Source: Phallusia mammillata
Taxonomy: Eukaryota
Length of the DNA stretch: 64,000 nucleotides
Reading direction: 5' to 3'
NCBI GenBank assembly: GCA_965637545.1
Contig: OZ281501.1
Location: 17,422,001 to 17,486,000 of the forward strand
Both the position numbers and the translations under genes were made by a program. Shown piece after piece: positions 9,941-46,361 of this stretch (positions within the stretch are counted from its first letter, which is position 1; each line of letters begins with the position of its first letter). The notes under the pieces are model-generated. The model saw nothing but the letters and a program-made list of their open reading frames with translations. It made no database searches and had not been told where the DNA came from.

Positions 9941-12900
9941 ATGTTAAAAATGCATAGATCTGGTATTCTTGTGCTTACGAAGCATGTTTCGTCTCTTTGT
10001 CATGGAGATGTCGTAAAACACATTGTAGCTGGTGTTAAAAAGGTCGTTTCTTCTACACTTTATGTCCATGTGGAAAATGCCAGCTCAAAATCAAATGCTT
10101 GTGGAGACTTTAACCCAAATGATGCAGACATTCTAAGTCGTTTGTTGCAAGGAGCAGAAAAAGTTGATGTTCAACCCAAAAATGTTCCTGAAGAGTTTTC
10201 TCCCGATGTTTTCCCGTTTTTGTGGAAGTTTTATTCAGAGGCAGCATCCCAGTGTCATGGATTGGACGTTAATATTCTTTTACATACAGTCGGTTGCAAA
10301 AACCCAGCAAAACATCAGCTTTACCGGTGTGTAATTTTTTGCCCAAAACATTGCTTTGGTTTGCTAAAAAGTTATAAATCATTGCAAATTCAAGACACCT
10401 TTTTAACTACCCCTGTTTTTTCACAAAAAGATATTGTTTACCTAGCCATTTCGTGAATGTTGTACTTGCTAACAAGTAACAATGTTGCTGTTTTTAATAT
10501 TTAAACATATTGCTTTTTTTGTTAAATCTACATATTATGCAATCACACTGAGAACCATTCAGTGACAGTAAATAACACACATGGCAATAATTTACAATGC
10601 TTAACAGCAAACATAACTTTCCCTTATTTTTTAGTCCAATCCAGTGCATAATGGCAGATCTGGATTCCCGATCTCAAGAAGTTTGTCAACTACTTCAAAA
10701 ATTTGTGTCCTCAAATTACAACTATGAGTCACCTGTAGACCATAAGCTTCCAGTCATTGAAATTGCTGATTACAGTAAAATGGACTTCAGTAATACTACA
10801 AATTCCAGCCCAAAGCAGCCATGCAATAGAAAGGGTTCAATTGTACTTGGTGGAACGTTCGATCATGTTCATACTGGTCACAAACTGTTACTCAGTGAGG
10901 CAACTTTGCTCGCAGACAAAAGAATTCTGATAGGTAAAGTTAAATACAAGTCATGTCTAACTATTACCTACATAAATCCATAATATGTTTACTACAGTGC
11001 AATAAAACATGCTACAATTTAAAAAAACAAACAGTAGGGTTGGAGTGTTAATACATGTGGAACATACCAAAAAAAATACACATGCAAAAAATTACTTATA
11101 ATTTTGGTTATGTATTGCATCAAGGCAATTCTGGCAAAACCTTCAAGGGTGAACTGACTAACTAATCAGTTAATTACCAATTTCAGGAATAACTGATGCT
11201 GGCTTGCTAAAGCGCAAAATTTTATCCGAGCTTATCAAACCGTGGGAACAAAGAAAAATACAAGTGGAGCATTTCCTGAGAGACATAGCAAATATCTATG
11301 TTAACCAGCCTAGGTAAATTCACCACTACACTTAATTTCTAAATTTCAATAGTTTTGACGTGTCAGTGACATTTGTGATGTTTTCAATTAGTGAGAAACA
11401 TCCCGCTAACTCAAAGTTGTTGGAAATTGTCCAAATTGAAGATCCGATTGGTCCAGCTGGTACAGACCCTAACCTGCAGTGCATTGTTGTCAGCAAAGAG
11501 ACAGAGAAAGGGGGCCATGTTGTGAATGAAGAAAGGCTAAAAAATGGCCTAAATCCTTTGTATGTTCATGTAATTACTGGAGGTAAGCATAATTGAGTAG
11601 ATACAAAGTAAAACCAATATTTGCATGAGTTTTAATGTGGCATGGGAATTTTGTGTTTTAAAAAAATCAGTTTGGCAAATAACAGAATGTTTTAGTTTTA
11701 TGAAAGCAAAAATCACATTTTGCCATAAAATCAGAATGGTGTTTATCAAATGATCAATGCAGTTTAAATGTTTGCCATGTATTTTTCTACAAATAAGACA
11801 TGTATAGAATACTTATATATGTATAAAACAAACTTCACCAATAGACACATATTCGCCTTTATTTGTAAACTATAGGGGTCCTTGATACCGATGTTGATTT
11901 ATCGAAATCTACAAACGAATCCAAAGTCAGTTCTTCAACGTTGCGCTTTGCTATGCTCGGAACCTTGCTTCGAGCTCCTAATACAAGAACCTCAACCTCA
12001 AATCATCCAGAAGGTGCCTATGTTATTGGGCTTACTGGGGGAATTGCATCTGGAAAAACAGCTATTGGACAACGCCTCGCCAAATTGGGTGCCACTGTTA
12101 TAGACTGTGATAAACTGGGCCACAAGGCATATGAACCGGGTACTTTAACATTTGAAAAAGTTGTGAAAAGATTTGGCTCCGATATTGTGGATAAATCTGG
12201 TGCAATCAATCGCGGCATTTTGGCAAGCAAAGTGTTCTCTGGTGATGACAAAAAGACAAATTTGCAAGATTTAAATCATATTGTATGGCCTGAAATTGAA
12301 AGACTGGCAAAGATTGCAATAACTGAAACAGTGGGACAACATCAATCACAAAAACTACCGAAACCTGTTTGTATTTTGGATGCAGCGGTCTTACTTGAGG
12401 TAGGACAAATTATTACATTATTTTATTGGTAGTTGGCTTATGTATTACATAAATTTGGTGTTTCTCAAACCTTTATGGTCTGTGACTATTTTCGCAACAG
12501 TAAAATGACTGGCATGCTAAAAAACATGTGTAAATGATGAAACATGTGTTACTGATGGTAATGATTAAGGAAAGCAGTAGGAAGAAAAATACTTTTGAGG
12601 CTCGTAGGATGTTTGCAGACTTACGCAAATTGTCCGTTTAAGTGTGACAACTTACCGACTCGAGTCAGTTTGTTTAAATTTAATATCTGTTTCATCGTCG
12701 CAACATTAGTTGATATTGAACATTATTCCTCACATGATACAATGCTGTAGAAACACGAAACTGCAAATTTTGACCTCTCTGTATCATTTCATAAAACAAA
12801 AACATTGTGCATGTTGTGTCAATCTGGATTTTTTAATACACAAATTTTGCCTACCCTACTGTAATTATTTTTCCTGCAAAAAGGATTTTAACTGTGGACT

Positions 12901-16438: not shown

Positions 16439-19400
16439 TCACCCCGATACTGAGAACGCTTGCTTGCATGCCATAAGGGCGTCCATAGCAGTTGGGGAAA
16501 GACGAAGGTCGTTCAAGGTCCTGCCCTCAAATGACCTCTCGTAACCCCTGTATGTTGTCCATTTGCCTTCTTCTACACCTTTAGTATGAACTCCATCAAA
16601 CCTGAGTAAAATTGCTTATTTAAGTTGGTTAGTTTGTTTCATTTTTATCCTCGGTGGGCGGACAAAGCCTGAATGCGTTATGCTCACAATCAGTCCGCCG
16701 TCGAGCTGCCTGTTTTATTCCAAGTACATGAAATCGTTTTTTTATCCAATTTTTGACCCATGAAGTTGACTTCAATTTGATTCAACCCGTCAGGTTCCAC
16801 TGGGTTGAAGCAATGTCGATTAAATTTCTTGCTCAGGAAAACTGACGTGGCCAAGACAGGATTAGAACGCACAACCCTGTGACCTTGGGGTGGTTACGCT
16901 AGCCACTTGGCCATCATGGTTTTAACCACAGTCCGGATAAAACAGTAAATCTCATCCAGATTATTACATCTCACTAAATTTGCAAGATTGTGGTTATTTT
17001 AACCTTTTCGTTATAAATCACAGTACGCCAGGCCTTAAAAAAGACGTCGTACCAAATCAGTCGGTCACCAAGCCTTTTTATGCGAAAGTGATAGACTAGA
17101 AAAATCTCGCATGCGGTGGGATTCGCACCCACGACAGGAGTTATTCCGGGGGACTCGCGCTCTACCAACTGTGCTACATCGTACGCAGCACATGTTAACT
17201 TCGTAGTATGGGATCGACAGATCGACCATTGATAATATTTTTCTAGCCTTTGCCTTGTCATATATGAGAATGCTTGGGAGACCGTATTGATTCAATACGA
17301 GGCCTTTAATAGACCTGGCTATATGAGTGTGTCGTGATCGCTGGTAGGCATAGAAGCTGCAGGACTGATCCCAGTAACTTCATCTTAACTGATTATTGGT
17401 CAATCTGGCGATCCCCTACTACGAAGCTTACAGTGCAGCATACGATGCAGGCAACGGTGCTTGTGATTCGACTTTAGACGGGCGTACGCTTAAAACACGC
17501 CTATATACTGACCTCGCAACACCGTTGACATCTTTATAGATTTTCGTAATCTTTCCCTGGTGATATCTGACCCCGCCAGAATTATTTCCATCCGTTCCAC
17601 CGTAAGATCCTTGACTGAATAAAACGATCGTACCTACCCCAATATCGCCCTCCAGTGGGCTTTCGTCTAATGCGACATCCTGAAAAAACAAACAAAAAAG
17701 TTTCTAACGGTCGGCGGTTCATGATTCTAGTGTTGATGTGACAATATATTGTTCGAATGTAAAATTTCCCGGAGATTTTTGAGAGGATAAATTTTACGCC
17801 CAATTGAAACACTCTGGTAGAGTATTTTTTGTCGGGTTTGGGCTAAGAATAAAAAAATGGAATAAAATTGACTTAATTCGGGCCAAACTTCACACTTGGC
17901 CTTTTTTGTGCCGACATTTTACCAAATTTTGGGCCTAATTCAGGTTTTGTTATTAGGTTAAAGCCCGGGTTCGGGTTTGCACTTTCGGATACGAACCGGT
18001 TCCAAGCCCAATGTCAGGCTCGCTTATACAACTCGGGTCCATGTACACCAATATGTACAAGCAAACTTAATTATTGAACCATTACAATCCTCTACACTCC
18101 TTGTAGCTGCAGCGCGTTTGGCTCTCATCCACCAGTTGTGCCCGACACTTTTATGTGCGCCATAACGTTTTAACGTTGCGCAGCTATTTCCGGCTTGGTG
18201 ATTGTTTTAGTGCAATTGTGTCGCTATGTTTTCCTTCACCAAGCAAAATAAACTCTACTCAACTCATATTGCTCTTTTGAAATATTTCATTTACCCGATA
18301 TGACTGGACTCTGCCGGATGGGTCATTGTCGTCCCAATTCACTGTGTAGGACATTTTATCTTCGTCGAAACTTTCAATAGTCGCCATGAAATATGCCCAG
18401 AGCTGATGCAGGCAAACCACGTGATCCCCGGGCACTGGAGCGCGAAATTTCTGCTGAGTAGGGGCTTCCCCGGCAGGTACTTCTGGTGATTCGAATCCTG
18501 CCTGTTCTCGGATTGCAGCGCTGTGAGAAAAGTGGATTGACTGCAATAGGCGTTTTAAATGGAAGAACACACACCGAGAAAAGGAGGTAAAAAAAGGTCT
18601 AAAGATTTGTTTTTTAAAAACCTTAAAGATAATGTGCTGCAAGTTTCAACTGTTCAAACAGTCTTTTATTTTCCATATTTTCTAAAACAGTCTTATTTCA
18701 AATTAAGTGGTAAAATAAGAAATAAAAAAGTAAAAAATGTAAAAAACGAGATTAAATTTGTACATACAAAAAAGTAAAAGAAAAAGTAGGAAAACAAAAA
18801 ATAATTTATGAAGGCGTAAAGCGTTGGAGTTTCTTAAATAGATGTTTCAGAATTTTTATTTGCTTACCTTATTTCCACAATTTTCGAGTCTAGTTCTTCA
18901 ATATTTGAAACATTTTGAACATTAATAGCTGGGTAGGTTCCCGCTACCAATTTTCCTACTGTTGTTTCGAGCCATTCGTCACCTTTTCCTGAAGAAAATG
19001 CAAAATACTAATGTAAATATCATGCTCAAATTGCTGCAATCTAATTGCCACAATCTTATTTCTGCAAAGCAAATTACCAGAATGAAATTACCACCATAAA
19101 ATTGCCACGATGTAGATACTATTTTGAAATTGCCGCGATGACATTTTACCACGATGAAATTACCACCTTGGAATTAATCGGTTATTTACTAGCACCACCA
19201 TTCCCACAACATTGTATTTTAAACATCCATAATTGACATAAAAGATGAACATAAATTCATAACTTATGCGATCAGCCTTGAAGCGTGTATCTATGCAGAC
19301 CAGCGATCACGGCACACTCATATATAAATCACAGTACCCCAGGCCCTTTGAAGGCGTCACACCGAATCCGCGATTGATATAAAAAGAATAATATAATCTA

Positions 19401-22400
19401 TACATCACGGCATAGGGACAGTAAATGCCGATAAACGGGCAAAAAACATTGGAATAAAACATGTTGTCATGTTTACCTACTACAATGGTCACTAAAGGTT
19501 TCTTCAAAGATTTGGCAGCAAACTGTATTTCCATCCGGCAGTTGTCGCTGTTTGCATATTCCTGACTCACACAAGCCACAGCGATCTGACATTCCTTCAA
19601 AGCTTCGGCGATTTGCCCGAACTAAAAAACAACCCAACAGAATTTGTACACCACTGTTGTAAGTCGGGTCGGTTTGGGCTTCAGTTTCTGGAAAGCGGTA
19701 TCGAGTTGGGCCTGTCTTCACACTCTGCCTAATTTGTGTCGTTATTTACGCCTGATTCAGACTTGACAAAATTCCGGTTTGGGTCGAGTTTAGGGATTGG
19801 ACTTTTGGGTTCGGCCCCCAATTTCAGGCCTACTTAAAACTCTAAGTAAGGCACACAGACTTGTGTATACACTGAAATAATTGCGAAAAATGTACTTGAC
19901 GAATTCTGACATGTAGATTATTGACTCCTTTAGCAACAAGGAACAAGCATTTATGATAATTTGTGCTGGAAAAAAAAACTTTGGAAAATCTACTAACACC
20001 ATACCTCACGGAAGACCCACATTTAGCTAATTTTCGATAGGTGGCGTAAAGAGCACTTTCAGGGAAGGGTCGAGGTAAGCGACGTAGCATTTAAAATTTA
20101 ATAAAACTATAGCAAAAGAACACAGTTACTAATTTAAAACTTCCAAAACCTTTTTTCCCTACCCTACCCTTCTTTAGCCGCTAAATAACTAATTCAGCTC
20201 ATTACGTCACCTATCAAAAATTAGCTAAATGTGGGTCTCCCGTGAGTTACGGTGTTAATAGCTCTACCTACAACTTTTAATACAATCGATACTGTGACGT
20301 CACTATCATACCATTCCCATTCCGTCAGCGGCGCTCTCGAGTCGCTGAACGTCGATCCACGGTGACATGCTGAGGGCAGTGGAGAGCTTTTGGACGATCA
20401 CACGCGGGTCGCTGAATTCTTCACCAACGCATTTCGATATTTGTCGTCGTTTTTCGGCCTCCATTGAGTTGCTCCAGCAGTAACTGAAGAAGAAATCGGC
20501 TTTTCCCGAAACCAGAGTACTGCCTGCGAAGATTTAGAGTTTATTGGTTGGAAAATCTGCTAAAACTGCAAAATTTCATTGTGACGTCATATATATCTGA
20601 CGTGACGTAACATGTGTGACGTCACTATGGACGTAACTTGTGTGACCTCATTATGGTAAGAGTAGTTTTGGTATTTGTTCCTGATTAAAGAATATATAGC
20701 TAAATAAAATACAAGCTTTTATATTATATACCTGTCACAGTGACTCCAGATTCAGAAAATAAGTCCATTTGGCCGTCACCTGTCGCTGGGTGGCGCACTT
20801 GCTTGATTTCGACTTTGGGAAGAAAGTTTTTGATCGATCTTGCCAGTTCGGTCATCTTGTATTCTTCTACCTCTTTGTTCTTAAAGTGAATATAGAGTTC
20901 TCCGGCTATGAGAAGTCCCACTACTGTCATTTGCCACTGAAACGACCCAGTACCAACCTGCAAGACAGAACTAAAAGTTATCGTTCCTAGGAAAAAATAA
21001 TGTAAATGGATTTTACATTTTAGTCTGCTGTCAAGGCAGGGTTTGGAAACATGGCCTTGTGAGCAACTACAGGCGTGGTAACGGTTTGGCAACGTACATT
21101 TGAATAACAGAGTACAGGCAATATGTCCTAATTATAACTGGCAGCGTAGCCAAACGGGTAATGTATAACTGCCAAGTAATCACAAGGTTGTGGATTCTAC
21201 TCTTGTCTCGGGCACTTTAATTGATTTCCATGACCAAGAACATTAAGCTGAATTGATCCAGCGGGATAAATTGACTGAAAGTCACCAACTTTGTAATAAA
21301 TGAAATAATCCAACAAAAAATAATTCAACAGACTTGCAATACAGGCAGCTTAACCACCCCTGGTATAGACTGTGTAACTCTACCATTGGTGCGCACAAGC
21401 TTGTCACCACTGCGTTTTTTGTGTGTTTATCGTCCTAGTTGCTTTATAACAACTTTATTTCAATTTATGTCATTACCCTGATGCAGGCGTCTCGTTTCGG
21501 ACATCATCACGTCGGCATATTATAATAAAAACTGCTGGAAGAGGCTACAAATTTGTTAATCAAAACTTGTTTCCAGTTTCAAATGCCAGAAAGCGTTGAG
21601 TTTACATATGCTTTCTCGCTTTTAATTTCCTCCCCTGGGTTATATACACTGTGATAAAACGGCTTAAATCTTACCACAAGTGGTATAACTGGAAGTTTCA
21701 TAGTTTTCTTTGCATACTGAAACTCCATTCTGCACCGGTCGTTGCTCGCATATTCGTCGCTCAAACAAGCGATGAAAACTTTAGTTCGCTTCAAAGCTGT
21801 GACGATTTCAAGAAGTGAGTCTTCGTTGTCATTTTCCATTGTAAACACTGTGAGTCCTGAATCAAAGTATAAAAGTCACAAAATGGGGTTTTACAGTAAC
21901 AACCCTTTTGCACATGAGTCTTCGGACTGAAAACTTTAAAAAGTCTGAAGTTATTCACGTTTTTTTATGTTTAGATAGTCAGTGGTCGGCAACCGCCGGT
22001 CCGCGGCCCGGTACCGGTCCGTGAGGAGTTCGTTACCGGGCCGTACAATTTTTTAGGTTAAACGCTATAAAACATTTTCACCATATATCCCGGGGATGAT
22101 AAACTAATTTAAGCGATTTTATTGCTAAATATTTGTAGTTTTTATGAAGACCGGTCCGCGATAAAATTTTAGTTTCAAAAACGGTCCGCAGTGCAAAAAA
22201 GGTTGCCGACCCCTGACCTAAGTAATATCATCAGTATCTCATTCAAATTCAAACAGACTTTTTAAAGTTTTCAGTCTGCTATTATATGCGACTGTTGTCT
22301 CCATCTGTCCTACTGAGTCTCTGGTGACTTGTGATTTACAATATCCTACACAGTTTATAGCACATAATTCTTGCTTAATTTTTTCCGCATTTGAAAGCTT

Positions 22401-25400
22401 AAAAAAAAGTCATAACTGGGAGCAGCCCTGAAGTGTCCGTGCAGACCAGCGATCACGGCACACTAATTTATAAATCATTATTTGCCGGGCCTATTGAAGA
22501 CGTTTTACCGAATCATATAAGAATGTTAAAGAGACCGGCTTTTAATTCGGTTTGATGCCTTTAATAGACCGGGTGTAGTATTATGTTTCAAGTTGTATAC
22601 AATGATGGTATTCAAACGTTACGATATATCAGCTGCACATAACTGTTTTTGGACAAACGAAACGTTTTTTGAGGATAAGTCCTGAAGCGCTAATGCAGAC
22701 CAGCGATCATGGCTGTCCAGTCCCAAAAAGGCTCCTTTCGGGGGTTCGATTCCCACTGCAGGCTAGATTTTATGACTTAATTAATGCCTTGCTATATGTG
22801 GGAATGCTTGGAAGGCCGGTTTGATTTGCTATAACTCTTGAATATAGGCTCAACGTACTATCATTTGTTTACTAAGGGTTTACTAAAAGGACACAAAAAC
22901 ACAGACACAACTGTTTTTCGTTAGAAAGGTTTCAACAAGATACAGAACCAACCTCTATGACCATTTTACCTCTATGACTACTTACCCATATTGCGGAGTC
23001 GATTAACAATATCTCTCGGGTCACACATACTGTCCACCACAGATTGTTCGTAGGAGGGTGGAAGCTCTGTTCCTGGGATTTCCGCCCGTTGTATTGCGGA
23101 GGGACAATTGATTTTGGCGTAAGACACGAAAACGTGGATTTCGCCGTCGACTTCAGTCGTGCCTTGATTGCCTTCTGGTAAAAACATTAAAATCGTTGAC
23201 CCGCGCAGAAACATTACATTACGTTCAATTGACGATAAGGTACAATATGGGTCATCGACTATCATCCAATGATAAAAAGTTTCTTACCAAAACAATCCGA
23301 TATATATTAATATTGTTCCCCAAAATGTTACACTAATTTTAACAAAACCACAGGACTATGAACAATTGAAGGCTACGTAACATTAAAACATTAATGAGAC
23401 AAAACATTAGAGAGTACGCTAACTATCCAGGGGTCAACAGTCAGTATGAAAGCATGGAGACAATACATGATAAGTTAGCTGCAGACAGTACACTATGTTT
23501 CAACCTATATAAGGTCTCATCAGTGCAGCTGACAAAGTGACCAACCTGTTTCCGATTCTATGGACGCGAGAATATCAAAAACATTGGGCGGAGTTCGGAA
23601 ATCCTCTAGAGTGTAATCAGTAAATGTCTGACTGTAGTCCTGTAAACGAAAAAAATGTTAAATTTGTTTTTGGGCCTCGGGCAATAACTTTGCTCCGGTA
23701 TCAGTGTAGGGATAGTTAATATATATTAACTGGGAACATGGCTCTTGCTGTGGGTTCGAATCCCACCGCAGACTAGAATTTTTAAATCTATGCCTTGTTA
23801 TGTGTAGGAATGCTTGAGAGACCCGCTTTATACGGTATGACGTCTTCAATAGACCTGGTAGTGTATGTTTTTTTTAATGGTTTACCCCTTTTGCTCATTT
23901 TGCTCCGTTTCGACTTATTATGAATGAATGGTGAAAATAATAGTCAAATGTTAATGCGAATTAATTAATTTGCTATAGAGGAAACCCCGGTTAAACCGGA
24001 TTCGGTTAATCCGGATCTTCGCCTAATTCGGACAAAACTTGAGGTACAAATGATTTGTAATATGGTAAGGCTTATCGACATCAGTTAATCCGGATCCTAG
24101 CATAATCCGGACAATTTGTTTGGTCCAAACGGGTGCGGATTAACCGAAGTTTGCTACTTTCTTATATTTAACTCCAAACTTTGGTGAAAAAAAAAAAAAA
24201 AAAACTTCTGTTCAATCATCATGTACCTTGTATGTGACCCATTTGCCGTCTGCCTCTCCTTTCGTGTGGTGACCCTGGTATTTTGTATTTCCCGATTTGT
24301 CTTTGTATATTTTGTCAATTTCTCCTTCATGCCAGCGATAACCTCCACTCCGTACAATACCATGCACCTCTTGTTGACGGTACCTTCATTTTATGTTTAC
24401 GCATTGTTGTGTGTTTTTTGGTTTGATTCATTGTTTTACGTTGTATTCTCATTTACTGGAAATGACTTTATCAACACCAAAAACGCTTTTATTGATAACA
24501 TAATCTGCACATTAATTTAAAGTGAATCACTAATTTGGACTAGGGATTTGTAGTGCACTCTTCTTTTCGTATCTTGAAACTATACGGCAGGGTTTCTTTT
24601 CATGTCGAACCCCTTCCTCTTTCCCTAACACCGGTGGTTGGTATTTTTTACCACCTTTTTCCGCTCCATCCATAACCTTTTAACGTTGCGAAGATATTTC
24701 CGGCTTGGTGATTGTTTTAGTGCTATTGTGTCGTTATGTTTTCTTTCACCAAGCAAAATAAACTCAACTCAACCTTCGCCAAAATGCCAAGTAGTTTGAA
24801 GTTGCTAGCGGCCTAAAATTGAACCAAACTCGAAAGTGTGCAAGCCCGAAACCTGGCCTGAACGCTATTGGTCTTAATTTGGCCCTAATATTAGGAAATT
24901 TTCGGTATAAATAATGTCCATGGTGAAGTCAGGCCCGAATCAACCCCAATTTATTTAGACTTAAGCCCGAACCCAACCCGAAAAGGCGGCGCCAAATTAC
25001 AATTCTGGACTTAAATGCTAAACTGTAAAGCAGGGGTGTCCAACTCGAAAGCACCGCCGTGCCAATCTAGGTTTTAAAATATACTCGCGTGCCAACGTTT
25101 GGTACTTTTTCCAAACCATGTATTAAACGTCTTAACGGTAGAAAAGTTGTCAAACTTGTTTATGATACTCCAGAAACCTTTCATAGCATACCATGTCGCT
25201 TAAAGCGCAGAATCCATAACATGGAATATAATACGACAGCATAAAGGCCCGGAATGATCAAGAATTTGCCAGTTTCAAACGCCTAAAAGTAGACAGATCG
25301 AGTCTAAAAACGACCAATTTAATTAGTGGATTTGTGTAACCTTAATACTGATCATCTTTACTGAAGTTAGAATAACGGCCAAAAAGAATCAATAGAAAAA

Positions 25401-28400
25401 TATAAATTGCCTGACAAATCCTAATGTTTACCATCTGAATGTGCAAAAACTTGCGTGCCATTTTCAAATGCTCTGCGTGCCACTTTTGGCACGCGTGCCA
25501 CGTGTTGGACACCCCTGCTCTAAAGTCTAAAACAATGATCTGAGCAAAAAAAAATCAAAGCCAGTATATTTGTGATTTTTTGCTCGGATTATTCAAAACC
25601 GTGAGTAGTGTACCTAAAACAATGAGCTATATAATTTTAATGTGAAGAACGAAAATAAATTACTTACCGGCCTTGGTGGAATAAAACCTTCGAACCAACT
25701 CCAATTTGGTCTGCAGATGGAACTTGGTCAAGAGCCAAGTTGAAATAATCGATATTACGTCCAGTTGGATCGTGGTCGTCCCACTCTATCGTGTACTTTA
25801 ACGTCGACTTATCGAAGCTCACAATCGTGGCTAAAATATTTAAAAAATTACACGTGATATTTGAAAAAGGAATATAAATACCTAAACGTACATACTTTTT
25901 ACAATCAAAAAAATAAAACAAAAATGAAATACATGTTAATAAAAAAAAAACCTTTACTTCTTAAAACTTCTTATAACCCTAAAGTGCCTGTAAAAGGCTT
26001 GGTTTGGGCTGTTTTCACACTTTGCACTGACAATGACAACAGCGATTGTTGAAACTTCTGCACTACAATCTACACCAGTGCTCTTCAACCTTTTTAGTGG
26101 CACGGAATCCTCAAGGTGGTTTGTCTCACTTTGCGGAATCCCCATAAAATAGTTTTAACCAATGTAATAGGATACACCAAAGAAAAAACATGCATTTTAC
26201 TTAACACACCCCAAGCACAAAATAAAAGTTGAAACGCATTGCCATGTTACTTGTAACCGTCGTTTCAACATTTATCTCGCATTTTTGCCAGAGTGGCTGT
26301 GTTTATTACGTTAAGGCTGTCTTTATCACGTCACAATTGATCAATGGTGCAACCAAGGTTAACTACTAGATTAGATATTACGGGCGAGCATTGCTGTTCG
26401 CAACAATGATATTGTTATGATTCATATTTGTACAACAAACCGCTGCGAACCCCTGAGCAACCCTTAAAGATCACGGAACCCCTGTAAGGTTAGTCGGAAC
26501 CCCGGTTGAAGAGCCCAGATGTATTCTATACAAGAGTTTTCAGTACTGCGTTTTCAACATAATTTTTACATTCCACGGACTCGAAGCGTTATTCATACCT
26601 AGAGAATTACAAAATTCCAGGATATAAAACAATAATTATTTTTGTTAGAAACAGACCTTTTGATAAATTTGTGTTTTCAATGGCACTCCTAGCTATTTTG
26701 AAACAGTGTTTTGGCCGAAAACTGTCTTATACTCGTGTATTAAATAGGCGTGTATTAAATTTTTACTGATTAACTTTAAAAGTTCATTTACCTGTAAAGT
26801 ATTGCCACTTGCTCTGACCCCACATCGCCACCACGTGGTCATTTATTTGTGGCATATTTCTTTCTACTCCGTCTCCTGTGTCTACTTTCATAGCAGCCAT
26901 TGCCCCTAATGGCTTCGGTTTTGTCATCGCCTGGATGACACAATGTTTTGTTTTATGTTGTAAAATAATATTGATATTTTTACAAACACCGCTAATATGC
27001 ATCAAGGCTTGTAAATGAGTTTAAGAAAAGCGTTGTAATGTACACATTGGTATATCACGTTTAAATCCGAGTTGTACAGTACTGAAAATTGAGGCTCAAA
27101 TCTGAAAATTAAAGATCGAAACCCGGACTGAATCCGATTTAAAAAACAAGGCCCGAAAGTTGGTTTAAGGCAGACCCGGATCAAGCCTGTTTTGTTTAAA
27201 AGCCCAAACGCGATCCAAAAAAACACATTACAAACCTGGTTTACGCAAAATAGTTTTTTGTCAGTGATTTTAAATCCTGTTTGAAAGTAGCCGACATATT
27301 TTTTCCCCACAAACAGCCTTAACACATCTCCTTTAACATATATGTGTATGTTACGAAAAGAGTGCTGTTTTATCATACTTTTTCCCTAATAATCGACCTT
27401 TCTTGTATTATCGAGTTCGATTAATCTTCAACAATGTGTACACGGTGTAGCTGCAGCGCGTTTAGCCATAGTCCGCCAATTGTGCCCTTCACTGTTTTGC
27501 GCTCCATATAAAGTTTCAACGTTGCGCAGCTATTTCCGACTCGGTGATTGTTTTAGTGCAATTGTGTCGCTATGTGTTCTTTCACCAAGCGTAAAAAAAA
27601 CTCATCTCAACTTCAACCAACACTTACCGTATGGTTAAGTTCTGTTGTTGGGGATATAGGGGCAGAAGAGTTATTGGAAGAAGCAACAGACAGTTGAAAT
27701 GTGAGTTGTTCAACCGCTTTTCGTAACTCCGTAACTTCATTCTGAAGTTTTTGGTTGAATTGTTTCAGCGTTTCAATTTCCTTTGCTTGTTTGGTGATTG
27801 TTTTTTGCATGTCGTCATCAGGTTCAGAATCATTATCTAAAGTTAGAGGGCCGTAATTGTATTATATAACTTACTGATACAGAGAACATGGCATTGCTAT
27901 TATCCAAAGGTAATTAAATTAAGTTTGTTAAATACTGATTTTTGGGATGAAAAAACATTGGGTTTAATTACTGAACTGAAACGGTACACATGCCATAGTT
28001 AATTAAATTGGGCTTTTTTGTACTGATAAAACACAGGTCTATACATAAAGATACGGTGGCAATACTGTTTTGTTGTACGTAAGTAAGCTTCTTTTTGTAA
28101 TTGTTTTTCGGGGTTTTACTTAAAACACTTATATTTTTCGAACGCAAATCCATCGTAAACGTACATTAACAACACAAAATAGTTCATGTTTATCAATATT
28201 ATACAGCATGCGACCTATTAGAAAGAAAACGCAGGATAAAAATCCTGATAAAAGGGCGTTATGAGAGCTATCAGACAATAGTTAGCAGACCATTGTTGTT
28301 GGTTACTATTCTTTGTAAAGCAAAGGCACACCAACCGCAGTAAAAATGGAATAAAATTTACATCGCTTCAAAAGTTTTGTGTGTCTTAGGTATTTTACCT

Positions 28401-29272
28401 TAAATTAAAGTTCAGTTTTCATTGTGGCCTTATGTAGCCACATGCAGTAACAGAAGAATTTTCACAAGGCACAGCCAAAAGACATACAGGTATTTGCTAA
28501 AGGGTGCGCCCAAACAAATGTAAACAATAAAATGACAATCCCTAAGCCTTTGTAGTCATAACACTAGCGATTGTATGCCTACGTCCCTACGAATTGCCAC
28601 ATACACATTAAGAATATAAAATCTCCAACCCGAATTAACAATAAATCAGTGTATAAAATAACATACATATTGCACTGAACAATATTCTTAAATTGACAAT
28701 TACAATTAGGTAAGGTTTTCGTAGTAAGTTGATTTCAAGGATATTTAGAGGCATATACCACATTTTCCAACAACTAGTCTTGCTGTAATCTCTTACTTTT
28801 TCCGATACTGTAAGACTTAACTTTGTGACTAGTTCGAAAATACAATACAATTACATACGGACAGATAGGTTTTGCAACATACCTCCAAATGACGACATAG
28901 ATTTTAAACTTGGGTCTGATGGAAAACCTCTTAAATCAGCTGCAGGTTTTCTATTAGTCGAACCTATAACATAATTTCTTCTATAGTTGTTTAAATATAC
29001 TGTGTAATTTAAGTTTTTGTAAGCAATATAATTCCATTTTCTGAAGACGAAGAACCTATAACATAGTTTTTTGTTTGCTTGTCCATATAAACTGTGTAAC
29101 TTAAGCAAGTTTTTGTGTACATTACAATTACAAACAAATTTTACATTCCGTTTTTTTACTTGACTTTTTTTAACTTACTTGCAAAAGACGCTATCGATTT
29201 CGACCTTGGATCTGAAGGAAATCTCTGCAAATTACGGGCAGGTTTTCTTCTAGTTGAAGACGAGGAACCCAT
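16439..29272 (-). CDS. Uncharacterised double-TIR, double Tudor-like-module protein with predicted N-myristoylation; 16 exons (29272-29179, 28963-28883, 27836-27628, 26930-26792, 25830-25668, 24383-24227, 23639-23546, 23174-22986, 21856-21675, 20957-20732, 20523-20312, 19621-19477, 18988-18868, 18520-18295, 17679-17513, 16601-16439); 855 aa
   Basis: All 15 introns are GT-AG with consistent phases; 2568 nt open frame. TIR1: HVFVSY...VFIACLSDEYASNDRCRMEFQYAKK..LPVIPLVV. TIR2: DFFFSYCWSNS...WIDV...IAVACVSQEYANSDNCRMEIQFAAK..KPLVTIVV. Two homologous modules of about 155 aa (DHVV..W.YF.ATI.SFD....YT..WDD.DP.GR...IGVG..VLF.QG...SGG.R.H.G.I.KIYKD). N-terminus MGSSSSTRRK. Confidence 0.88.
16846..16920 (-). 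mobile_element. Second tRNA-derived SINE head family (related fragment on + at about 52500-52550)
   Basis: Minus strand reads TGGCCAAGTGGCTAGCG...GCGTTCTAATCCTGTC (A/B-box-like); similar GGGTTCTAACCCTGTC at about 52525. Confidence 0.45.
16995..17355. mobile_element. Inverted pair of tRNA-derived SINE fragments (minus copy about 16995-17185, plus copy about 17220-17355)
   Basis: Minus head TAGCACAGTTGG...GGTGCGAATCC; plus body GAATGCTTGGGAGACCG...AATAGACCTGG...GTGTCGTGATCGCTGGT, also seen at about 22790-22850 and 23790-23840. Confidence 0.7.
17780..18035. mobile_element. Dispersed GCCCGAA/TTCGGGC-rich element family (other copies about 19650-19830, 24780-25015, 27060-27290, 45130-45330, 51150-51240, 51780-51935)
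   Basis: Recurrent internal motifs (AAGCCCGAA, GGCCCGAAA, GGGCCTAATT) and ends resembling CAG(A/T)GTTGTAA / TTACAA(C/T)TCTG; boundaries approximate. Confidence 0.6.
18086..18270 (+). repeat. About 190-bp interspersed repeat, three same-orientation copies inside the TIR gene (also about 24660-24775 and 27440-27615)
   Basis: Shared core AACGTTGCG(C/A)AG(C/A)TATTTCCG(G/A)CT(T/C)GGTGATTGTTTTAGTGC...TTCACCAAGC ending in AACTC-type tail repeats. Confidence 0.85.
19290..19400 (-). mobile_element. Tail of the same tRNA-SINE family (reverse orientation)
   Basis: CTATGCAGACCAGCGATCACGGCACACTCATATA is the near reverse complement of about 17322-17355. Confidence 0.7.
21980..22215. mobile_element. hAT-type MITE (truncated sister copy about 55278-55462)
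   Basis: TIR CAGTGGTCGGCAACC...GGTTGCCGACCCCTG; the internal sequence is repeated at 55278-55462. Confidence 0.85.
22440..22850. mobile_element. Cluster of rearranged tRNA-SINE fragments in both orientations (further plus copy about 23700-23840)
   Basis: GCAGACCAGCGATCA tails at about 22441 and 22696; B-box GGTTCGATTCCC at about 22744; body GAATGCTTG; GGTTCGAATCCC at about 23754. Confidence 0.7.
23976..24155. mobile_element. Tc1/pogo-type MITE, reverse-orientation sister of 36934-37288
   Basis: CGGTTAATCCGGATC and GGTCCAAACGGGTGCGGATTAACCGAAGTTTGCT match the RXR intron element in reverse complement. Confidence 0.8.
25031..25517. mobile_element. hAT (Charlie-like) MITE
   Basis: TIR CAGGGGTGTCCAAC...GTTGGACACCCCTG; 8-bp TSD CTGTAAAG/CTCTAAAG (1 mismatch). 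Confidence 0.9.
26076..26518. mobile_element. hAT-type MITE
   Basis: TIR CAGTGCTCTTCAACC...GGTTGAAGAGCCCAG; TSD degenerate. Confidence 0.7.
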
Positions 29273-34200: not shown

Positions 34201-37200
34201 AATGTGTTAATTACTTGTTGCTTGTTTTGCACCGCAGCAGTACAAGAAGAAAGACAAAAGAATAAAGAACAAGATGAAATGGGTGAAGTGAATCCAGCTG
34301 ATGAAATGCCAGTGGAAAAAATATTGCAGGCTGAGTTGGCTTCTGACCCCAAACCAGAAGATATTATCAGTTTACAGGAGGTAAAATGCCAGGAATGGCT
34401 TATATTTAACATAGTGCATGGTGTCTTACAGTGACACTACAGTACTGCTTGTTGTGTTCATTGGTCTAGTATTATTGTTTGCTTTTGGTATGCCTGTATT
34501 GAATTAGTGTATGTTTTTTGTTTACTTGTTACCATACTATCCTATATTTTTTACCAAATTTAGCCCAGTTAAATATGAATGAAATCGATAAACTTATAAA
34601 AAAAATAATGTTTTAAAGGCAGTTTTGATCTAGATTAGTGTTTCTCAACTGGAGTACTTTTTGGGTGGTCCACAGGATTATAATTATTTTGGTGAAAACT
34701 GGAAATACTTGGATATAATTGATTCAATATTCAGCACGAAAAAAGCTTATCCAAGTTATTGGCTATTTATGGATTTGCTGTCAGTTGTTTGATATCACTC
34801 CTCAAAATTCTGTATTAAAGTAATATATTTCAAACCAATATTCTTGTTGTGGGTGCTTTCTTTATCCTTATTTGACAATGGACTGGTCCATGATATTCAT
34901 TTAAATTGAACTGGTGGTCCATGGCCTGAAATGAGCTGAGAACCACTGTTGTAGACTGCTAAAATACTAATATTTCATATTGCACCTTATTCTTGACAGC
35001 AAAAATAATTGATGCAAATATATTTTGTTACAGCCAATGGACTCTGATGCCAGTGTGTGCAAAGCTGCTGATCACCAATTGTTCACGTTGGTAGAATGGG
35101 CCAAGAAAGTTCCTCACTTCTCTTCTCTTATATTAGATGATCAAGTCACATTGCTAAGAGCAGGTCAGTTGTTACTCTGCTATTGTTTAGGCCAGTGGAT
35201 ACTGAAGGTGCACTCCCGAAAATAGCTATGTGACCCCTGAGAATCATAATTTCATGGCTATCTTTTCAGTACATACACATATGGTAAAATTTGGACAATT
35301 TCATAGGAGCATCCTGGAGTAAAAAAGAAACACTGGTGTAGATACACTGAAATCTATCATATACAGTGATACTAAAATAGTATTATTGTAAAAAAACAGT
35401 GAATTTTTAGCCATGCTTTGTTTAATTACATAACTTCATGTTTTCAATGAACAACTTATGATGTCCTACACTGGCTTTACAATAACCACATTTGTATTCT
35501 TGATTGTCATTTAGCTGGTTGAGATAGCTAACGTTGTTTACTCGTTAGGTCATTTTGTTTGTTACGATGCTTTAATGCGCTTTAATTGCTTCACTTTATA
35601 ATTTTTGTTGTTATGCCCTAGTGGCACATTGTTGAATAAAGCCAAGAAGCCTATATCGTTCGATTCCGGTTTTAAATCTTTAAGTAGAGAACCAAGTCAT
35701 ATACAAACCATATTTCACGTCTAAGGGACCGCCGCAAAAAGGTCATTAAAAGGTTAATGTTAGCTTGGCTCATGCAGAGGTTACTGCAGGTCAACTTTTA
35801 GGTACTGAGTAAGACGGTTGAAAATGATGTAATGCGCTTATGCTGTAACGCACCTTTATGAATTGGCCCTGTTCATTTAGCTTGGACATCTCTACCTAAT
35901 ATTGATGTTTGACTATTTCGGTTCTAGGTTTGTTTTCTGAAGTAATTCATATATTTTTCAGTCGAACATTGGTTTAGCCGTGTAATTATTAACACTTAAT
36001 TATCATTTTTTGCCTTCAGTTTCAGTCTTTAAATGATAAAATTTATCATTAAAACATTTGTTGCTGTAAAAATTGAGATTTTTCTGTGTTAGGCATGCAC
36101 GGCTTATTGTTTTAATCAAACCTGTAGCACGTTTGGAAAATTGTAGAACTTTAATTCACGGGCCAAGAGCCAGTCGATAACGAAATTAGCGCAAATATTA
36201 TGTCGCCCTTGATTGGCTTGTATTACACGTGCTTTTCCAGTAATACCAGTGGTAAGCGGTTGTTTGTCGCAAGTTGTTTGACGTGTCGGCCACACTTTGG
36301 ACTTTGCCACTGGCTTCGTGACAGAATATAAATCCCTCATGTCAATAAACTGCGGATCTCAAATCTATCTTAATACACCTAATCCTAATCAAATTCTCAA
36401 AAAAACCGCAACTCTGCTCTTCAAAAGTAGCCCAAAACCCGCATACAAAGTAGATTTAAAAACTAGCCCCAAAAGCGCAACTACAAAGTTAATTAAAAGC
36501 AAGTCAAATTTTAACGTCATTTAAATACTAGTAAAGACACATGCATGTAAAATAACAAAAAATGTTCTTTTAACAACCCGCTAAAAAAAGCTAAAACCGC
36601 AGCTTTTTGACCGAAAAGAGCCCAATTGGGTAAAAAAAACGCCACCCTAAGAAAAAACTGCACCTAATAATGCTGGTATATGTTCTTAACAGGTTGGAAC
36701 GAGCTTCTTATAGCGTCTTTTAGTCATCGGAGCATCGAAATCCCAGATGGCATTATTCTGTCCTCTGGTTTACGTGTCTACCGGCAGACTGCTCATTCTG
36801 CGGGCGTCGGGGCCATTTTTGACAGAGTTCTTACTGAACTTATTTCAAAGATGCGTGATATGAATATGGACCGCACAGAACTTGGCTGTTTACGTGCTAT
36901 TGTGCTTTTTAATCCAGGTATGTTGACTAAGTACAGCAAACTTCGGTTAATCCGCACCCGTTTGGACCCAAAAAATTGTCCAGATTATGCGAAGATCCGG
37001 ATTAACCGATGTCGATTAGTTCAAGCCTTGCCACATTACAAATCATTTGTACCTCAAGTTTTGTCCGGATTATGCGAAGATCCGGTTTAACCGATGTCGA
37101 TTAGTTCAAGCCTTGCCACATTACAAATCGTTTGTACCTCAAGTTTTGTCCGGATTATGCGAAGATCCGGATTAACCGATGTCGATTAGTTCAAGCCTTG

Positions 37201-43230: not shown

Positions 43231-46200
43231 ATGACTATGGATAAACCTCTCACATTAAATAGCATATGTCGGCTAACGCTGGCTAATGCTATGTTTAAAA
43301 GGCTTATTGGGGAAGAAGATATTAACAAAATTCACAGAGCTCTTACTCAGTTTGTGTCTGGAAAAATCGTCCCAAATTCTGCTGTAATAGGAATTCTGCA
43401 AGCTTTTCTGCTCTGCTTGGACAGTTGCAGAACGCTTAGGGTTGCAAGGACACAGATAACCCAAGAAACATACTCAAAAACCAATTCTTGGGGTCAGGGC
43501 ATACACAGAAAGGACAGTGAGTCCGAAAAACAAGGTCCACAAAGACGTTTTAAGACCCTGCTATTGGCTCGTCACACTGTACACGTCATAATGGCTACTT
43601 GGACAAAGGCTGCATTCGGCCAGTCACACCTGATTGACTCCGACTTACCTGTTGAGTTGACGATGCGAATGAGGCAATGGCTGGCCTCGTACATTGTCGA
43701 CGGTTTCCTTATGTGTAATAACTTATGTCGGACATCGTTCCCTTCAATCAAGTGCCAGCATACCATTACTGACTGGGACGAAATGCAGACAGAAGGCAGG
43801 TGCAGACAGCGCAGTCTAGAACACCACAACAATTTAGCGCAATTGGACGTACTTGCAGTGAACTTGTGCAAAGAAATTCGAAGTGAATATGGACTCACTG
43901 GTCATCCAATGAAAGAGTTGGACATGCGAGCTTCTAGTGGAAACCTCCAATGTACAAGGACAACTCTGAATTATCTAAAAGTGGCCCTCGAACAGTCACG
44001 TGACAGGGAAGATGACGCAACAGATTTGAAACCTTTACGAGGTATAAAAAATGTTGTGTTGAGCTGTAAGTTTTTCTTTATAGTGATGTAATAAATACAC
44101 AAATACCAGAGATTCTGTGTGTAGTGAACACAGTATGTTGAAACATGTCCTACAATAGTTATTGTTGTTTAAAATGACTGAACAATTAAAATGTATATTA
44201 TTGATATGTACGTGGTTGTATTACCTTCATACCTGCAAGTTTAAACAAATGAAATATGTTTCGCAGTGCAAGATATGCCGACCATCAAACTGGAGGTAGC
44301 TATGGTGGGATCAACACACAATGCACACTCAGACAATTTGCTCGCTGTTTTGGAATCTTCGAGAAAACATAACATCAATATCAGCATCTCTTCTTTCAGG
44401 TAAGGAAACTGTAATAGACTAGTCCGTTTGAGATCAATCTTGCTTTTTCTGTCCAAGGTTCAATGTGTTTCTAACAATAATTACAAAATTTTAGAACCTA
44501 TTCTTTAGCGATAATTATGCAACTTTCCATATAGTCGTTTTGGGAACCTCCTTTCTTAAACACGTTTTTTGGGACCGTGTTTTAGGTTTAAAATTGATAG
44601 GCTGTGTTTCGCATGGGGCGCAATATAGTGGTGATCAAAAATGAAATGCCCGATTACATTTGATCAGTACCATTTTATCAGTGTGAACAAAAATGCTAGT
44701 GTTTAAACGAGATTATTGTAAACGTGTAGTCTCAGTCGTTTTATTTTCAAACACACATTGGAACTAACTTTTTTGTTCAAGCGAAATTAAGCAACCGGTC
44801 ACAACCGTTTGCGGATTTTTAAACCAAGCACGTGACACTTTCAGGTTCGATGACGTCACTCCGGCTCTGACGTCAGAAATAATCCGCAACCTTGTCGACC
44901 CTGGTCTCATCCGACAACTGCACTTCCGCCACGTGGATCCTACTTGTCTGTTTCAAACCAAAGATGCTTTAAGAAAGTTGACAGGACTCGAAGAATTCTC
45001 GTTGTCCACTTGCTCTTTCCAACCTGTTACGTTCAACGCAGACGAGGTTGGTTGCAATGGTTTTATTTACATGTAGTCGATATCGTTTGTTTGTTTTTTT
45101 GCCGCCTGTAGTCAAATTACTAATGTAGCTACACTTGAGATAAAATTGGGTTCAAAATTGAAGCCCAAACCCAGTTTTACAAAATATAAGCCTGAATTAG
45201 GCCCGAAAATTAGATCTGCCAAGGTGGAAATACTAGACAAATGTGGCCAACTATAAAGCAAGGCTCGAATTAAGCGCGGTTTATTCTACCGTAAGTCCGC
45301 CAGCCCTAATTACAATTCTGGCTCGGATTAAGACTGCAGGCAACAGAACTATTGTAACAGAACAAAAGAAAGATGAGCATTTTTCAACATGTGTCATTTT
45401 TGTTTTACTGTAAGTAAGATGTTACTCACCCTGCACAAAGTAATCATCACAAAAACGTATGTTATTTAGAAATGCCTGTTGGTTTTTATTGTAAAATAAG
45501 ATGCGCACCGCACGTCTTTATGATGTAATAAATAAACCGGATTGCCCTCGCAAGGCTTATGTAACTGTGTTTCCGTTGACAGAACACGCAATACAACTGA
45601 CAACACGTTTATTGAGGTCAAAATAATTTGTATTTTTTTTCCTCTAGACCGCCACCTTGTGGAACGAAATGATTGGCAACTGGCCAAAACTTCGCTGGTT
45701 GGAAATCAGCAGAATCTGTTTCACGTTCAAATCGGCATCAGACGTCAAAATATCTCCATCTTTGAAATATCTTGAATTCTCCGAAGGAAGCTTATCAGCT
45801 GAAATGCTAAAGTGGCTCACTGGGCATTTTGAACAAGACGGAACTATTCGATCTCTTCGTTTTGTGCGCGAAACCGCTCTTTCCAACCGTGAACGTCTTT
45901 GGAAAGAGTTTACTAACCTTCTTAGCGCATCTAGAACATCAATCTCAACTCTTAGCGTCGACCATTGCTGCCTTAACGACAATCAATGCGACGAGATGAC
46001 CCAGGTTCTCGGCTCAGACACCACAACCCTAAGTTCCCCGCCTTCAAGCTTAAAGAAACTCACCATTCGCGAACCGCACACTAGTTGGCGCACTATGAGT
46101 GATATTTTTTCAACAGTTATTTCAAGTTCCGTTCCTCTTTTCCCAAAGCTCCATTACTTCTCAGCGCTTGTACCACGAATGTCCGAAGTCTCGCAGTGGC

Positions 46201-46361
46201 AACGTTTTATTGTTCCGACCAGTGCTGACTGCGCAATAGAGGTTGCGAATCAAGGGGACCCTCGCCACTTCTACGAAAGGAAATTAGCCAAGTTGGCCTC
46301 TAAGGAAGGAAGACACGTGCAAATTGACCTATGCTGGGAGCCTGAGTGTGACTGGACATAA
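43231..46361 (+). CDS. Uncharacterised protein with N-terminal BC-box-like motif and C-terminal degenerate LRRs; exons 43231-44041, 44267-44399, 44845-45046, 45648-46361; 619 aa
   Basis: 1860 nt in-phase spliced frame; TLNSICRLTL at the N-terminus; LxxLxL repeats LTGLEEFSL, WPKLRWLEI, SLKYLEF, TIRSLRF, SISTLSV, SLKKLTI, PKLHYF. Confidence 0.8.

Follow-up and report, generated by a model that had tools for sequence, protein, structure and literature searches.

SARM1 and its Caenorhabditis elegans counterpart TIR-1 are TIR enzymes of axon degeneration and immunity that cleave nicotinamide adenine dinucleotide (NAD+), i.e., TIR NADases. To our knowledge, few animal TIR proteins besides SARM1 have a known enzymatic role. 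Other TIR proteins are recruited to membranes: TRAM (TICAM2) is a cytosolic protein brought there by N-myristoylation, and TIRAP/MAL by a lipid-binding module. In the present study, a gene was analyzed that occupies positions 16439 to 29272, on the minus strand, of a 64,000-nucleotide stretch of Phallusia mammillata DNA (GenBank assembly GCA_965637545.1, contig OZ281501.1, forward-strand positions 17,422,001 to 17,486,000; the whole stretch is called the window below). By orthology, the gene is the ascidian representative of an ancient, conserved family, shared by choanoflagellates and animals and so far uncharacterised, with the core tandem Tudor-TIR-TIR-tandem Tudor, and we regard this assignment as close to certain.

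Compared with SARM1 and TIR-1, the window protein has two TIRs per chain and is without ARM and SAM, carrying Tudor modules and a coiled coil instead. Furthermore, the tryptophan of the WxxxE motif is Asn or Arg, the similarity was not significant, and the protein is not an ortholog of SARM1. In the window exon pieces and in the orthologs, no Pfam match was found to ARM or SAM, to the LRR, Ig ectodomain and transmembrane families that mark TLR and IL-1R, or to the death domain that marks MyD88; the MyD88 TIR gave a weak profile match (E = 0.016). The initial annotation, made from the letters of the window, had set the protein apart from TLR, IL-1R, MyD88 and SARM1 on the absence of LRR, transmembrane, SAM, ARM and death domains, which was in agreement with this result, as the traits of each of these proteins were lacking. 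The lipid motif of the window protein, and the PH variants in the Tudor-TIR family, are presumably comparable with the targeting parts of TRAM and TIRAP. However, the latter two possess a single TIR, have neither Tudor nor coiled coil, and showed no detectable homology beyond the TIR fold. Moreover, they are vertebrate-specific, whereas the named sources of the Tudor-TIR family are cnidarians, tunicates, sea urchin and choanoflagellates only. The prokaryotic systems Cat1, SPARTA TIR-APAZ, Thoeris ThsB and SAVED-TIR differ in another way, the window protein being eukaryotic, predicted to be lipid-anchored and of tandem TIR type; its putative sensor is the Tudor pair, whereas prokaryotic TIR effectors use a SAVED, CARF or Argonaute module. 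The tandem Tudors of SETDB1, UHRF1 and 53BP1 (also SAWADEE and SGF29) shared 10-16% identity with the module, in which the last cage aromatic is Asp. SETDB1, UHRF1 and 53BP1 are chromatin proteins, whereas the module here sits in a predicted lipid-anchored TIR protein, with a polar residue set of its own in barrel 2. Mollusc Toll receptors with tandem TIRs likewise hold two TIRs in one animal protein (PMC4929906), but they are reported to be transmembrane LRR receptors with TIRs of the canonical type and without Tudor, coiled coil or lipid anchor.

The extent of the family was investigated by profile and word-index searches. A profile of Tudor barrel 1, run against 1.84 billion representatives, returned 135 proteins; 15 had a length of 650-1057 amino acids, and 14 of these 15 carried at least two module stretches. 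Two word-index searches each gave about 50 full-length relatives among the best 8000 word-sharing candidates. The relatives comprised proteins of corals, sea anemones, Hydra, a jellyfish, three ascidians, a sea urchin and Salpingoeca rosetta, together with EukProt transcriptome entries, and the named ones are labelled "uncharacterized", "TIR domain-containing" or "Tudor domain-containing" in RefSeq or UniProt. The closest database proteins, all RefSeq predictions from ascidians, were collinear with the window protein: LOC143468110 of Clavelina lepadiformis (58% identity, window residues 1-853 against 1-849), LOC120344759 of Styela clava (56%) and LOC100182474 of Ciona intestinalis (64%; the Ciona protein is N-terminally short). 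Uncharacterised orthologs were also found in Nematostella vectensis (LOC116604300, about 45% identity), Lytechinus variegatus (LOC121423874) and Salpingoeca rosetta (PTSG_10079), and the more distant members shared 33-38% identity with the window protein. The orthologs show the same order as the window protein, namely a targeting N-terminus, a coiled coil, tandem Tudor, TIR, TIR and tandem Tudor. The N-terminus itself differs: tunicates have MGSSSS and a basic patch, whereas cnidarians and several choanoflagellate-type members have MGC, a start of the myristate plus palmitate type. No vertebrate, arthropod, nematode or mollusc name occurred among the best 8000 candidates; because scoring covered these candidates only, absence from those groups is unproven.

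In a quick maximum-likelihood tree, in which the sequences named as outgroup were not separated from the rest by a single branch, the window protein fell in a tunicate-type clade of five (with Clavelina, Styela, Ciona and one further protein; 99% in the Shimodaira-Hasegawa-like approximate likelihood ratio test) and adjoined Clavelina. This clade joined an anthozoan clade (support 87) and then a medusozoan-type clade. The choanoflagellate-type members lay outside, and the sea urchin protein was on a long branch. The tree is consistent with a family that was already present when animals and choanoflagellates diverged, was inherited vertically and was lost many times. The literature search found no paper on the family, none pairing tandem Tudor with TIR and none naming the ortholog loci; Gerdol et al. 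2017 lay outside that search. They are said to have defined invertebrate "ecTIR-DC" families, which may list the Tudor-TIR-TIR-Tudor family. The initial annotation had called the architecture novel. This was overstated: the layout is not unique and belongs to a database-wide family, with about 50 full-length relatives, all uncharacterised; what stands is that no paper describing the layout was found. It had also named a characterised ortholog as the finding that would speak against it, and the orthologs found are all labelled uncharacterised.

The gene model was built by joining stop-free segments at GT-AG sites that keep the frame, in a window without N runs. The reconstructed gene comprises 16 exons and 2568 nt and encodes 855 amino acids, with a single stop at the end; all 15 introns are GT-AG and in phase, and the reading frame has no internal stop. 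The exons are as follows (window coordinates).

Exon 1, 29272-29179, minus strand: start codon, MGSSSST motif of the N-myristoylation type, polybasic patch and repeat 1 (residues 6-31); supported by the motif pattern and family conservation
Exon 2, 28963-28883, minus strand: repeat 2 (residues 33-58, FPS..KS..SF motif); a second motif copy is also present in the Clavelina ortholog
Exon 3, 27836-27628, minus strand: acidic patch and coiled coil (residues ~68-108); supported by the heptad test and coiled-coil Pfam matches in orthologs
Exon 4, 26930-26792, minus strand: linker and start of tandem Tudor 1 barrel 1
Exon 5, 25830-25668, minus strand: tandem Tudor 1, end of barrel 1 (WDDHD, W191 codon 25783-25781), linker and start of barrel 2
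Exon 6, 24383-24227, minus strand: tandem Tudor 1 barrel 2; weak acceptor, backed by the ortholog alignment
Exon 7, 23639-23546, minus strand: C-terminal strand and helix of tandem Tudor 1; supported by likeness to the module 2 tail, tblastn and orthologs
Exon 8, 23174-22986, minus strand: N-terminal part of TIR1 (box 1, HVFVSY)
Exon 9, 21856-21675, minus strand: TIR1 core with CRMEF, Glu420 codon 21725-21723; Pfam TIR_2 at 1.4e-7
Exon 10, 20957-20732, minus strand: C-terminal part of TIR1 and inter-TIR linker; donor 20732 set by orthologs
Exon 11, 20523-20312, minus strand: N-terminal part of TIR2 (FFFSYCWSNS, DPR, WIDVQRLES)
Exon 12, 19621-19477, minus strand: TIR2 core with NCRMEIQFA, Glu613 codon 19531-19529; Pfam TIR_2 at 1.7e-6
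Exon 13, 18988-18868, minus strand: C-terminal part of TIR2
Exon 14, 18520-18295, minus strand: linker and tandem Tudor 2 barrel 1 (WDDND, W733 codon 18336-18334)
Exon 15, 17679-17513, minus strand: tandem Tudor 2 barrel 2
Exon 16, 16601-16439, minus strand: end of tandem Tudor 2, C-terminal helix and stop codon

The initial annotation had described an intact 16-exon frame of 855 amino acids that begins with MGSSSS and basic residues as a lipidation signal, continues with two 30-residue repeats and a coiled coil, and ends in two TIRs flanked by Tudor-like modules. The same model was rebuilt from segments and splice sites, and every one of these elements was recovered, the repeats being slightly shorter (about 26 residues each). 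The exon junctions were examined against the tunicate-clade proteins, and the multiple alignment showed zero indels at them. The stretch that follows the weak acceptor at 24383 was matched residue for residue in the ortholog alignment, which also backs exon 2, donor 20732 and the small exon at 23639-23546, spotted by the likeness of its translation to the module 2 tail. Donor 20732 was preferred over donor 20780 because the latter (an 839-amino-acid model) dropped 16 residues kept in all aligned tunicate-clade proteins. A separate exon between 22981 and 21875 was likewise rejected, as TIR1 is complete without it. When the 855-residue model was searched against the whole window by tblastn, the matches were the gene and its own internal repeats, and no paralog was found elsewhere in the 64 kb.

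The ascidian gene has 15 introns, whereas in two intronless orthologous loci (L001:1001-3427 and L002:1001-3223, on ENA assembly contigs of 3.2 Mb and 12-15 kb) the Tudor-TIR-TIR-Tudor layout is one uninterrupted open reading frame (ORF). In addition, coral contigs of 2.7-4.9 kb, which are possibly transcripts, encode a full-length family protein. Because of these ORFs and contigs, the layout is taken to be one polypeptide and not a fused pair of gene models. The protein is arranged as two mirror halves (Tudor-TIR, TIR-Tudor), and within each pair of duplicated domains most introns sit at different places; therefore, the duplications of the Tudor and TIR domains are old. The introns also hold interspersed elements: three copies of about 100-170 nt that are 83-93% alike (18102-18263, 24670-24773 and 27446-27609), and two copies of a second element (19287-19368 and 22433-22514). 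At the intronic positions ~22000-22400 and ~24000-24200, contigs from four probable RNA runs accumulate in many variants, as for a high-copy repeat.

TIR1 spans about residues 320-486 and TIR2 about residues 516-672, and the two are 33% identical over 174 amino acids (E = 5e-21). On the window exons, Pfam TIR_2 (PF13676; curated cut-off 28 bits) scored 32.5 bits with exon 9 and 28.9 bits with exon 12. The orthologs reached 61-80 bits (1e-19 to 1e-21), four of the five that were scanned having two matching stretches, and TIR_2 was also present in 9 of 10 scanned shorter, likely partial, module-bearing proteins. The flavodoxin-like alpha/beta TIR fold was found in the models. Across 49 family members, TIR2 was the most conserved part of the protein: F.SY.W.NS, DPR, W.D and S..YA.S.NCRME.QFA.KSL.KP vary little or not at all, the last being conserved in at least 80% of members. 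The glutamates at the catalytic position of TIR NADases are E420 in TIR1 (CRMEF) and E613 in TIR2 (NCRMEI). The TIR2 glutamate is present in 47 of the 49 members and aligns with the glutamate of Cat1 (...WCWDEL); that of TIR1 is kept in nearly all aligned animal members, whereas most non-animal members have Gln or a different residue there. WxxxE is the motif of the TIR NADases SARM1, plant TIRs, AbTir and Cat1. Judged by sequence, one of the defining features of a NADase TIR (the glutamate) is present in the window protein and one (the tryptophan) is absent.

In profile searches of the PDB, the best match of TIR2 was the TIR of the CRISPR-associated NADase Cat1 (E = 7.7e-6), followed by MyD88 (0.016), plant and bacterial TIRs and then SARM1 (about 0.5). 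A profile of the N-terminal half of TIR2 ranked SARM1 first, with an E-value of 0.035. Matches were obtained with profiles alone; single-sequence PDB searches with TIR2 exon 11 and with Clavelina residues 305-690 gave none. In structure comparison, TIR1 was closest to SPARTA TIR-APAZ, TIR-1/SARM1 and the plant TIRs RUN1 and RPS4, and TIR2 to Hydra TRR-2, SARM1, IL-1RAcPb, MyD88 and AbTir. Among the PADLOC defence models, PDC-S66 (1.4e-10) and SAVED-TIR (7e-8) matched the TIR2 of a choanoflagellate member, and no model matched the tunicate TIRs at E <= 0.01.

The two flanking modules, about residues 152-310 and 695-850, were 46% identical over 151 amino acids (E = 6e-42). Single window exons gave faint Pfam Tudor_3 and Agenet hints; exon 14 alone, a single exon and not the spliced module, scored 12.5 bits with Tudor_3 (E = 0.14). 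In the orthologs, Tudor_3 reached 33.8-36.7 bits against a cut-off of 25.8. The feature search of the ESM Atlas with exon 14 led to Tudor and Agenet clusters only (0.85-0.87). A model of Clavelina module 2, made with 43 homologous modules, had a predicted local distance difference test (pLDDT) score of 94.1 and a predicted template modelling (pTM) score of 0.87. It was all-beta with a C-terminal helix and contained two packed Tudor barrels, which bears out the Tudor-like reading of the modules in the initial annotation. Foldseek placed the tandem Tudors of SETDB1, 53BP1 and UHRF1/2 at the top with a probability of 1.0, and SETDB1, FMRP/FXR and SGF29 were also matched in the shape search of the ESM Atlas. 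No meaningful match was obtained with the barrel-1 profile against the PDB. The conserved pocket residues of barrel 1 are [W/H], [Y/F], W42, D44 (invariant) and D46, at positions that we take to be those of the 53BP1 cage, and a group that is methylated or cationic in another way would fit such a pocket. A separate set of polar residues is conserved in barrel 2: Q78, Y81, R93, H95, H116 and K118.

The protein starts with MGSSSS, followed by the basic residues R8, R9, K10, R13 and R17. MGSSSST fits the N-myristoylation pattern M-G-{EDRKHPFYW}-x-x-[STAGCN]-{P}, presumably PROSITE PS00008. The motif (MG[CS]xxS) was present at the N-terminus of 26 of the 49 family members and, in four further ones, just inside a probably mis-called start. 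Cys3 occurs in 21 of the 26 and would allow palmitoylation; the window and Clavelina proteins have no Cys3 and carry the basic patch after the motif instead. The lipidation signal is a conserved trait of the family, so that tethering to a membrane can reasonably be inferred, and the protein is probably membrane-anchored. The N-terminal part is swapped between lineages around a fixed four-domain core (family proteins P0013, P0049, P0151 and P0170). A PH domain (44.6 bits) stands in place of the lipidation motif in the member from the choanoflagellate Salpingoeca helianthica, an EF-hand pair occurs in the N-terminal part of one member, and C2H2/Di19 zinc fingers follow MGC in medusozoan-type members (Rhopilema, Hydra).

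The two N-terminal repeats (residues 6-31 and 33-58), which are short and rich in Ser, were 61-64% identical, and the Clavelina ortholog also has two copies of the FP[ST]..KS..S repeat. Repeat 1 (window 29180-29257, minus strand) contains RFPSDP, which we take to fit the R-x-x-S-x-P shape of a 14-3-3 mode-1 site, and repeat 2 (28884-28961, minus strand) has GFPSDP; neither Clavelina nor Styela retains the exact RFPSDP motif. The coiled-coil string lies at residues 70-103. Its hydrophobic occupancy of heptad positions a and d was 0.79, a value reached by 0 of 5000 shuffles, and the orthologs gave coiled-coil Pfam matches too.

A working model of the protein may be put forward as follows. Myristoylation at Gly2, together with the basic patch, would hold the protein on the cytosolic face of a membrane, and the coiled coil would pair two chains; both membrane targeting and pairing are suggested by their conservation. 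The two tandem Tudor modules would be ligand-reading or autoregulatory modules that control the assembly of the TIR domains. Catalysis would most likely fall to TIR2, by cleavage of NAD+ or production of a nucleotide signal. TIR1 would most likely be a built-in partner TIR, because in published structures active TIR enzymes need a second TIR; its catalytic-position glutamate is lost in many non-animal members. As its output, the protein would give a signal in stress, immunity or cell death near the membrane. The initial annotation had likewise proposed a membrane-tethered intracellular sensor-effector, with a tandem-TIR enzyme that ligand binding and oligomerisation would switch on, as a candidate innate-immune or cell-death system. 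Identity and mechanism taken together, this is the best explanation overall, held at just under an even chance. The enzyme-sensor mechanism as such (anchor, pairing, Tudor-gated TIR2 and NAD+-derived output) is tentative, being less than evenly probable. A further-reaching version sees in the family a premetazoan module, a lipid-anchored tandem TIR enzyme paired by its coiled coil, with two tandem Tudors that would gate it by reading a methylated or other cationic ligand. Such a module would couple NAD+-derived signalling or cell death directly to protein methylation, or to a small cationic metabolite, at membranes; it would have persisted in lineages from choanoflagellates to tunicates and disappeared from vertebrates. 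Its chemistry may differ from that of the known TIR NADases, given the invariant Asn at the position of the WxxxE tryptophan. This version is doubtful and more speculative.

Several observations weigh against a TIR enzyme gated by Tudors. The tryptophan of WxxxE is replaced in both domains, by Arg416 in TIR1 and by Asn609 in TIR2, where the Asn is invariant in an alignment of 24 TIR2 sequences. The same glutamate occurs in TLR TIRs that are not known as NADases, and its presence is therefore no proof of catalysis. Taken alone, the sequence matches to SARM1 fall short of significance (E 0.035-0.5). In the structure comparison of TIR2, the scaffold TIRs of Hydra TRR-2, MyD88 and IL-1RAcP tied with SARM1, and because of these ties the fold cannot tell an enzyme from a scaffold. 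Furthermore, the fold models were made on the Clavelina ortholog rather than on the window protein, and the placement of TIR1 relative to TIR2 was poorly defined in them (pTM 0.58). In the predicted Tudor pocket, an Asp replaces one aromatic of the 53BP1 cage. Finally, the sequencing runs found were of DNA apart from small probable RNA runs, and within window positions 18400-24399 the contigs of four of the latter fell on intronic repeats only and on no exon; the runs are small (20-34 million letters of contigs), which makes this result uninformative rather than negative.

The absence of the WxxxE tryptophan from both TIRs would suit a non-enzymatic TIR adaptor, i.e., a membrane-sorted scaffold like TRAM or TIRAP that bridges TIR receptors to partners by TIR-TIR contacts, with the Tudors recruiting methylated or other partners. 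The N-myristoylation motif is of the kind found in vertebrate TRAM, the PH variants presumably recall the lipid-binding part of TIRAP, and MyD88 was the second profile match of TIR2 (E = 0.016). However, no homology to TRAM or TIRAP was detected, and the best profile match of TIR2 was a prokaryotic NADase TIR. Both TIRs are of the TIR_2 type, with a choanoflagellate member linked to prokaryotic defence TIRs, and the TIR2 glutamate and its neighbours (NCRME) are kept nearly family-wide, more tightly than the fold alone requires. An adaptor is unlikely on this evidence, though it keeps a sizeable share of the probability. The Tudors also allow for a nuclear reader of methyl marks on chromatin, in which they would bind histone marks in the manner of SETDB1, UHRF1 and 53BP1 and the TIRs would merely oligomerise: the closest Tudor structure matches are all histone readers, and the acidic-aromatic pocket residues are conserved. 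Yet the conserved N-terminal myristoylation/palmitoylation motif or PH domain points to membranes, nuclear, DNA-binding and chromatin-enzyme domains were not found in most members scanned, and TIR_2 accompanied the module in nine of the ten shorter proteins. Such a chromatin role is improbable.

The locus could also be a model artefact or a dead gene, either two neighbouring genes (Tudor-TIR and TIR-Tudor) joined in error or an unexpressed pseudogene. The weak acceptor at 24383 and the four probable RNA runs without an exon-covering contig speak for this, the latter being weak evidence given the size of the runs. In contrast, 2568 nt are free of stops over 16 exons with 15 in-phase GT-AG introns, the orthologs align collinearly without indels at the junctions, and the family-invariant residues are kept. 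Moreover, the intronless orthologs carry the layout as a single continuous ORF. An artefact or pseudogene is thus very improbable.

In a strongly conserved core, the family pairs prokaryote-like TIR_2 domains with tandem Tudors, a pairing that was found in no paper, and the Tudor pair would be a sensor module of a kind not described before on a TIR signalling or effector protein. If the Tudors do gate a membrane TIR enzyme, methyl marks or a cationic ligand would be a new input to TIR signalling, and a sensor-effector of such a type would date to before the origin of animals. In addition, the Ciona ortholog makes the question accessible in an established laboratory chordate.

Some ORF pieces were also noted in other parts of the window. 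At 9941-12432 on the plus strand, ORF pieces carry the motifs of phosphopantetheine adenylyltransferase (GGTFDHVHTGH) and dephospho-CoA kinase (GLTGGIASGKT), and from these motifs the region is probably a bifunctional coenzyme A (CoA) synthase gene. By eye, an ORF piece at 36680-37090 (plus strand) resembles the ligand-binding domain of a nuclear receptor (RXR/HNF4-like), and two ORF pieces at 58092-58822 (minus strand) resemble inosine triphosphate pyrophosphatase (ITPA/HAM1). Long open frames of 286 and 234 amino acids were also observed at 43231-44091 and 45657-46361, respectively, both on the plus strand.

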